Positions 35,101 to 36,523 of a DNA stretch of 64,000 nucleotides are shown here, piece by piece; the first letter of the stretch is position 1; the number at the start of each line of letters is the position of its first letter. Made by a program: the position numbers and the translations under genes. The notes beneath the pieces are model-generated. The model searched no databases, was not told where the DNA came from, and saw only the letters and a list, made by a program, of their open reading frames with translations. The stretch lies in assembly GCA_964247055.1 (NCBI GenBank), contig OZ176054.1:10540001-10604000 (forward strand). The letters are read 5' to 3'. This DNA is from Paragordius varius. Its lineage: Eukaryota > Animalia > Nematomorpha.

Positions 35101-36523
35101 TATTATTATATACTGAAAAAAAATTAATAAAATTTTCTCATTAATTTAAAATCAAATTGGGATGTTGTCAGTTAAGATCAATGCATACATAATTTTATCT
35201 AACCCTATCTGTAAAATAACAAACTAATCTTTTCTAACAAACTTATTATATTTATTGTTACTAAATTTTTCTACTTAGCATATCAAATTTATAAGTCTGA
35301 CATATAAATTCGAAATTATTCCCGTTTGCATTAGAATAAAAAATCATTTAAAAATTCTTTTTAGTGTTTCGTTTTACACATTATATTTTAAAATTTTATT
35401 TTATATTACATATCTATAAATCTTATGTGTGAAGACAAAAAAATTGGATTATACATAAAATATTTACATGATCATCAGATGCACTCAAAAGATATCCATT
35501 AACATTAGGGTTCCAAGACAAGCCATACCCTTCTTTCAAATGACCCTTGAGTCGTAATTCAGGTTGACATACACCATTGGCATCTTTTAAGAATTAAAAA
35601 AAGCAAAAAATATAATTATACAATCAAAGAGTAAAAATTAAATTACTATAAAAAGACAACCATTCAAAACTTAATTTTACAGGATTATATATTTATAAGG
35701 ATAATTAAATGTATAATCGAGGGTAAATATATTTCAAATCTCCAGACTGTATACGCAACCCAAAACGAGTTATAAAAAAATCAATGGTTAAAAAATATCG
35801 TTATCTTTTAACAAAAAATAATTAAATTTTTACGTTTGAGTTTTTTACGGACTGTAAAATGAAAAGGCTATTTATAAATCCAAAATTAAAAAAAAAACCT
35901 GGTTTCGAAGGGTGCTTAGTGTAATCAAAAATGAGAACATCTGAGGTTGGAGTTTTGGTTGCAATAATACAGGGATTTTGAGGCATATAACGAGCACGAT
36001 TGACTTCTCCCTCGTGATTTATTTTAATATCAATCTCAATTTTACCAGCCATTGAACCAAATCCACCGAATTCTGCAAATCATAAAAAAATAAAAGAAAA
36101 AGTTTAATAAAAAATCAAATTAAATTTTACCTCCTTTCTCAGAATCATAATGAGAAGCATCAAAAGGTGCTTCATCATTGGGAATTTGAACAGAAGCAAT
36201 TACCAAATGATTTTGTTCATCAGATCTAAATAAATTATATAAAATGCAAAACTTACGTATGTGTCCCAAGAATTAATCGGTGTAAGCTATAGTCTTTGCC
36301 TTCAGGTCTAAAAATAAAATAAATATTATAATACTTTGTGATATCAGGTAACCATTGAACAGTTAAACTTGGCCACTCCAAAGCATGTGTCATAACTAAA
36401 TCATATAAGAATGGAGTGTTTTTCTTCCATATTTTATATTCTTCATTAATTATTCTTTCTTCTAATGCTTCATCATAAGCTAAATAATTTTTTTAAAAAA
36501 ATAAAACCTTCTTTTTCAGACAT
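29137..36523 (-). CDS. RBBP4: Histone-binding WD40 protein RBBP4/RBBP7 (CAF-1 p48/p55), 13 exons, 487 aa
   Basis: Exons (minus): 36508-36523, 36335-36479, 36257-36307, 36131-36225, 35899-36072, 35468-35583, 33442-33620, 31681-31807, 31212-31289, 30167-30301, 29516-29626, 29398-29443, 29137-29327. The total is 1464 nt, in phase. The translation carries the family sequence almost unchanged: [123 protein letters not shown]. Confidence 0.97.
30794..31075. mobile_element. Family G MITE, RBBP4 intron 9
   Basis: Near-perfect inverted repeat ATACGGACAAAACGTAAAAATATAAAGACAAAT (30808) / ATTTGTCTTTATATCTTTATGTTTTGTCCGTAT (ends 31064). Confidence 0.82.
32282..33404. repeat. Family G MITE with ~8 tandem copies of a ~120-bp unit (about 32405-33404), RBBP4 intron 7
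   Basis: Starts TA|CAGTAAAAATT with the family G left TIR. The repeat unit is approximately TTTTAACGTGTTACCAATATACATCTGTCTATACTATACTTTGGAGTT...AAAATCAAGATTTGAAAAGTATGGTT...TTTTAGAAAAAATATTTGCCTTTATA. Confidence 0.85.
33640..33841. mobile_element. Fold-back MITE (~200 bp) in RBBP4 intron 6
   Basis: AGTCATGTAGGTTTAGAAT..AAACATACGTTTT / AAAACGTATGTTT.GATTCTAAACATGCATGACTG|TA; followed by a (TA)n run. Confidence 0.72.
34070..34532. mobile_element. MITE family I, copy 2 (RBBP4 intron 6)
   Basis: TATACCATTTGCACTTCAAGAGTGTCCTTGA / TCAAGGACACTCTTGAAGTGCAAATGGTAT, a ~30-bp near-perfect TIR. Confidence 0.75.
34857..35096. mobile_element. MITE family H (RBBP4 intron 6)
   Basis: TATACCATATACA...TTCACCC / GGGTGAATTTGAATTGTATATGGTATA. 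Solo right ends also occur at ~13570-13640 and ~63030-63146. Confidence 0.6.
36226..36256 (-). other. 31-nt intron (RBBP4 intron 3)
   Basis: GTAAGTTTTGCATTTTATATAATTTATTTAG; removal gives LGTHT|SDEQNHL. Confidence 0.93.
36308..36334 (-). other. 27-nt intron (RBBP4 intron 2)
   Basis: GTATTATAATATTTATTTTATTTTTAG; removal gives WLPDITK|PEGKD, matching the family sequence WLPDVTRPEGKD. Confidence 0.85.
36480..36507 (-). other. 28-nt intron (RBBP4 intron 1)
   Basis: GTTTTATTTTTTTAAAAAAATTATTTAG; removal gives MSEKE|[14 protein letters not shown]. Confidence 0.9.

Follow-up and report, generated by a model that had tools for sequence, protein, structure and literature searches.

The hairworm gene for the histone chaperone RBBP4/RbAp48/Caf1-p55 carries at its 5' end three consecutive segments of 28, 27, and 31 nt (micro-introns i1, i2, and i3), which are very likely genuine U2-type GT-AG introns that shrank to 27-31 nt from old animal introns and would be handled through intron definition by an ordinary spliceosome. 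The gene lies on the minus strand of the window, i.e., the whole stretch of 64,000 nt of DNA that was analyzed, and starts with the ATG at 36523. An initial annotation of this DNA had proposed GT-AG segments at 36507-36480, 36334-36308, and 36256-36226; all three were found there, each beginning with GT and ending with AG, and the exon and intron sizes that it gave were recovered with the same values. Its view of them as obligatory micro-introns in a conserved gene was supported; the gene is single-copy, and removal of the segments restores the reading frame. The anatomy of the gene and its conservation suggest that this removal occurs by splicing.

Layout of the gene and removal of the three segments

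The gene is made up of the following features.

36508-36523, minus strand: exon 1, 16 coding nt, encoding M-S-E-K-E and the first base of Ala
36507-36480, minus strand: i1, 28 nt, phase 1, 7% GC, GT-AG
36335-36479, minus strand: exon 2, 145 nt, H4-binding N-terminal helix region, match to human RBBP4
36334-36308, minus strand: i2, 27 nt, phase 2, 7% GC, in frame and stop-free, GT-AG
36257-36307, minus strand: exon 3a, 51 nt, match to human RBBP4
36256-36226, minus strand: i3, 31 nt, phase 2, 16% GC, GTAAGT...AG
36131-36225, minus strand: exon 3b, 95 nt, match to human RBBP4 residues 73-103
36073-36130, minus strand: intron 4, 58 nt, GT-AG
35899-36072, minus strand: exon 4, 174 nt, single copy in the genome
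35584-35898, minus strand: intron 5, 315 nt, GT-AG
35468-35583, minus strand: exon 5, 116 nt
33621-35467, minus strand: intron 6, 1847 nt, with high-copy repeats (summed contig depth up to ∼1,000x baseline)
33442-33620, minus strand: exon 6, 179 nt, six residues more than in homologues, single copy
31808-33441, minus strand: intron 7, 1634 nt, repeat-laden, GT-AG
29516-31807, minus strand: exons 7-10 (127, 78, 135, and 111 nt) and introns 8-10 (391, 910, and 540 nt)
29360-29515, minus strand: intron 11 (72 nt, 29515-29444) and the last coding exon seen

Judged by its sequence, the gene is RBBP4/Caf1-p55, with the N-terminal H4-binding region followed by WD40 blades and a high identity to RBBP4 of solved structure. 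The exons were queried separately, one by one, in every search. The N-terminus fits the M-x-[DE]-K-E-A pattern of the homologues, and exon 2 was near-identical to human RBBP4 and fly Caf1-55, both with solved structures (E ∼8e-26 against human residues 8-54 and the equivalent part of the fly protein). Exon 3b was also highly similar to the solved structures, PF12265 was recorded on fragments homologous to the exon 2 region, and the WD40 exons were picked up with tblastn when other loci were compared. The hairworm gene differs from known RBBP4/RbAp48/Caf1-p55 in a 6-residue insertion in exon 6, which places six residues more between WD-repeat strands than in any of 120 homologous fragments; at this site, the homologues read ...DINAQQKDARVIDAQ.... 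The last exon runs to a stop at ∼29360 and is followed by an N/T-rich open frame (29364-29140), which might be a C-terminal extension reached via another splice.

All 11 introns of the gene, i.e., the three micro-introns and the eight others, have GT-AG ends. The chance of finding GT and AG at all six ends of i1-i3, computed from the local base composition, is ∼1e-8, and the GC content of the micro-introns is 7-16% vs 39% in the exons. Retention of i1 leads to a stop after 16 codons and retention of i3 to an immediate stop. The length of i2 is a multiple of three and it contains no stop, so the reading frame would not catch its retention; translation through exon 2, i2, and exon 3a aligned with human RBBP4 residues 6-72, the only gap being one of 9 residues that coincides exactly with i2. 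The exon pieces cover human residues 6-54, 55-72, and 73-103 without any residue lost or gained; as the match of exon 3b begins at residue 73, removal of i3 brings residues 72 and 73 together without loss. In Paramecium, stop-free tiny introns whose length is a multiple of three are selected against, and i2 (36308-36334) is of exactly that kind. Translational bypass or frameshifting was dismissed as an explanation for the segments, since splicing accounts far better for GT-AG ends at ancestral intron positions.

A search of sequence runs with this stretch returned no run on record as RNA that holds it, and the runs of the species labeled or presumed to be RNA contain next to none of its words. 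Word searches of fragment-sized, transcript-derived proteins with the exon 2-3a read-through and with exon 6 gave no fragment from the species or a close relative.

Age of the intron positions, copy number, and genomic setting

Four genomic RBBP4 loci of other animals (L001, L002, L008, and L009) were compared base by base with the hairworm gene, and the following positions were found to be held in common.

i1 position: phase 1, ∼16 nt into the coding sequence, directly upstream of the conserved exon 2 start; common to L001, L002, and L009, and one codon further upstream in L008
i2 position: phase 2, in the K/R codon before PEG; common to L008 (372 nt) and L009 (∼57 nt)
i3 position: phase 2, after GTHT; common to L001 (∼73 nt), L002 (∼100 nt), L008 (∼1,070 nt), and L009 (∼65 nt; perhaps slid by one codon)

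The introns at the matching positions in other animals are thus ∼55-1,070 nt long, and more than 20 further database fragments break off right after GTHT. As all three positions hold introns in other animals, i1-i3 represent old introns that have shrunk in this lineage. The ancestral status proposed earlier for i1 and i2 agrees with these shared positions. The suggestion that i3 was gained in the lineage is not supported, as the same phase 2 position after GTHT carries an intron in the four other animal loci; loss of this position by vertebrates is more likely. The exon sizes of human RBBP4, against which those of the hairworm had been set, were checked only indirectly, through residue numbering in solved structures. 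An RBBP4 locus of a hairworm relative was sought for comparison within the phylum and was not found.

The assembly consists of 110,561,105 bases (110.6 Mb) in 44 contigs. Throughout the whole assembly, exon 4 and exon 6 each matched this locus only, exon 4 even at E ≤ 10. As these two exons, the ones tested, match a single locus, the animal has no other RBBP4/7 gene. Four public DNA runs (X1, X3, X4, and X5, from three samples and two studies, under two organism labels) provided contigs that were colinear with the window over 35862-36650 with at most six gap letters, and the X3 contig spans i3 without any difference; X1 possibly comes from the very sample behind the assembly and is therefore not independent support. 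Collapse of the assembly, which the initial annotation had named as a reason for doubt, is contradicted by the colinearity of DNA contigs from three samples, and no sign of longer introns was seen.

Two other readings of the segments were weighed against this evidence. It is exceedingly improbable that RBBP4 is a decaying pseudogene here or that the segments are insertions from assembly or sequencing: nothing beyond the unusual lengths speaks for it, while the eleven exons are all intact and closely resemble RBBP4, the GT-AG dinucleotides at six ends have the low chance probability given above, exons 4 and 6 match only this locus, and independent DNA contigs are colinear. A pseudogene, an assembly artefact, and a paralogue elsewhere were rejected on the basis of the colinear contigs and the one-locus matches of exons 4 and 6. 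Somewhat less improbable, though still unlikely, is at least partial retention of i2, which would add nine residues after residue 54 in one RBBP4 isoform and leave only i1 and i3 obligatory. The open frame of the read-through is compatible with such an isoform, and microsporidia are known to splice tiny introns inefficiently, as cited in PMC13644364. However, among 100 homologous N-terminal fragments that contain both anchors, 97 lack an insertion at the i2 site, the remaining three being read-throughs of longer in-frame introns, and the segment is GT-AG bounded, 7% in GC, and placed at an intron position common to L008 and L009. Removal of all three segments as introns hence remains the preferred reading.

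The initial annotation had also pointed to long introns in the same gene, and these are indeed kb-sized and full of high-copy repeats. Introns 6, 7, and 9 contain stretches with a summed contig depth of 10 to 1,000x baseline in all four DNA runs; these are high-copy repeats. The repeat stretches in the RBBP4 introns were located at 30700-31100, 31900-33500, 33700-34500, and 34880-35280, and the pile-up includes an inverted-repeat joint at 34119/34470-34475. The kb-sized 3' introns are long because of the transposon copies inside them, and the length classes of RBBP4 therefore look like minimal introns plus transposon-inflated introns. Of the earlier description of the genome as uncompacted and TE-rich, the repeat-rich part stood; the word "uncompacted" needs care, as the assembly is only 110.6 Mb. 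The four published hairworm genomes are quoted at 200-300 Mb, and the present assembly is smaller. The GC content of the window was 22-36% per 2-kb bin, mostly ∼25%, not far from the value of 26.9% reported for Gordionus montsenyensis.

Over 30 inverted repeats were found in the mitochondrial contig (C44; 15,693 nt); the arms measure 31-208 nt, most of the repeats are 100% complementary, and many lack a spacer. Many long perfect inverted repeats within coding genes, on an exceptional scale, have been described for mitochondria of Nematomorpha (PMC6649704). The repeats of C44 are a feature typical of this phylum, and the host is very probably a gordiid horsehair worm. A search with COX1 returned no close match, its best hits reaching 76-79% identity. 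The largest perfect palindrome of C44 measures 2 x 208 nt (5104-5519), and a tandem array of ∼72-nt hairpin units is present at 6752-7451, just upstream of COX1.

Splice signals and the spliceosome

Five micro-introns were available in the window, i.e., the three in RBBP4 and two in a gene for an MFS/SLC18-like transporter, also on the minus strand, which needs two GT-AG segments spliced out, one of 26 nt (21473-21448) and another of 25 nt (21351-21327), with the frame shifting 2 -> 1 -> 2 across them. This transporter gene is an independent case of the class. The 5' splice sites of i1 (GTTTTA) and i2 (GTATTA) match U1 poorly. The 5' signal is weak in general, consisting of GT followed by A or T, and four of the 11 RBBP4 introns start with GTT. 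The 3' ends of all five micro-introns are T-rich. Four of the five have an AAT that precedes the AG by 6-9 nt and lies 19-22 nt from the 5' end, a sample too small for a rule, and the 27-nt i2 offers an A at a distance similar to that of the AAT of the other micro-introns.

These observations are consistent with a model in which major-spliceosome introns of this lineage would have shrunk to 27-31 nt at conserved positions and would most likely be recognized by intron definition. Recognition would depend on a minimal 5' GT plus A or T, on a branch region that is A-rich or resembles AAT, and on a short run of T leading up to the AG; the putative branch region lies ∼19-22 nt into the intron, with 6-9 nt remaining before the AG. 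These signals would be read by a spliceosome that is ordinary in other respects. Both the branch site of i1-i3 and the intron-definition mode are deduced from this arrangement of signals.

The genome was found to contain the following spliceosomal components.

U1: eight copies over the cut-off, full-length, the best copies with 5' ACUUACCUG
U2: at least 35 copies over the cut-off, full-length, with the GUAGUA branch-site reader intact
U4: one copy, full-length
U5: four copies, with canonical loop I
U6: two copies, with ACAGAGA intact
SF1 (helix-hairpin domain, PF16275): a single match above the cut-off, covering the C-terminal half of the domain
U6atac: found with 66 bits at C2:4857045-4857187

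U12 was not found in the genome at E ≤ 0.001, with few candidates scored. Many of the U2 copies lie on contig C3 between 257 and 527 kb. One U1 copy (C6:606254-606419), which is structurally complete (122 bits), has the 5' end ACUUACUUG instead of ACUUACCUG; it sits in a cluster of ∼15 U1 copies (C6:565-633 kb), many of which are decayed.

A modified spliceosome, as earlier suspected for this animal, was not in evidence: full-length copies of U1, U2, U4, U5, and U6 carry the canonical motifs for the 5' splice site, the branch site, and catalysis, and the genome has an SF1 gene as well. These sequences give no indication of a modified spliceosome core. A changed splicing apparatus in a wider sense, whether through altered proteins, through a U1 variant, or through a ruler-like mechanism reserved for introns of less than ∼32 nt, is very unlikely. 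The intact U1 variant with ACUUACUUG, the failure to find U12 though U6atac was found, and the weak 5' splice sites throughout the gene are the observations in its favor. Against it stand the snRNAs with unchanged recognition motifs together with the SF1 gene, as well as the weak GT[A/T] starts and T-rich AG ends, which are common to the long and the tiny introns of the gene; moreover, myxozoans handle 22-nt introns with the conventional set of components (PMC13644364). The preferred reading thus remains that of short U2-type introns served by an ordinary spliceosome.

Significance and comparison with known short-intron systems

A survey of 51 animals published in September 2026 in Mol Biol Evol (PMC13644364) reported introns of <30 nt from no animals other than myxobolid myxozoans and Dicyema japonicum and predicted that further cases would be found. 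In its text, hairworms or Nematomorpha are not mentioned, and the word intron is absent from two hairworm genome preprints. The present introns are probably real and unpublished, and hairworms probably the third animal lineage with introns this short. As for length, i1 (28 nt), i2 (27 nt), and the two introns of the SLC18-like gene (26 and 25 nt) fall into the <30-nt class, and i3 (31 nt) lies just outside it. The dominance of short introns that goes with a compact, TE-poor genome was not seen, as RBBP4 introns of 315-1847 nt hold high-copy repeats.

It is proposed, tentatively and with somewhat less than even confidence, that hairworms are the third independent animal lineage with introns of less than ∼30 nt and the first in which these are mixed within single genes with kb-sized, transposon-filled introns. 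The shortening would then be not a by-product of compaction but a separate 5'-proximal mode of intron definition with a near-fixed distance between the 5' splice site and the branch point, and the gene losses reported for the phylum may be overstated where annotation does not allow such introns. Both lineages with <30-nt introns known so far have reduced genomes (PMC13644364); the occurrence of a 27-nt and a 1.8-kb intron in one hairworm gene would uncouple intron shortening from genome reduction. Such genes would offer a natural test bed for the smallest intron that a conventional spliceosome handles and for intron definition vs exon definition within one transcript. In practical terms, gene finders with a default minimum intron length will disrupt the 5' end of such genes, which could distort the gene sets and completeness scores of Nematomorpha.

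Conventional spliceosomes are known to act on introns far below 40 nt in ciliates (Paramecium, ∼25 nt; Stentor, 15-16 nt) and in nucleomorphs, as cited in PMC13644364. These are unicellular lineages, however, in which nearly all introns are tiny. Among animals, the closest likeness in size is to the myxobolids and Dicyema japonicum, which are also parasitic and have GT-AG introns of ∼20-30 nt at conserved positions between conserved exons. According to the survey (PMC13644364), they share with the hairworm a 5' signal reduced to GT plus A or T and a U2 of the canonical form, and in both the likely branch site consists of A residues ahead of the AG; for the myxozoan introns of 22-27 nt, U2-dependent splicing of the canonical kind was concluded. 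The survey describes a whole intron population that is short (median 22-27 nt) and compact genomes with relatively few transposable elements, whereas in the hairworm the tiny introns occupy the 5' end of a gene with repeat-holding introns of up to 1.8 kb.

In this respect, the hairworm gene resembles the microintron-bearing genes of flatworms (Opisthorchis, Schistosoma, and Echinococcus; PMC6530080), in which a two-class length distribution occurs in repeat-rich genomes, the microintrons lie next to each other towards the 5' end, in genes that also have kb-sized introns, and annotation software at default settings misses them. The flatworm microintrons peak at ∼37 nt, compared with 27-31 nt here, and as flatworms belong to a different phylum, the two would be of independent origin. 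Hairworm RBBP4 combines the architecture of flatworm genes with the intron size of myxozoans.
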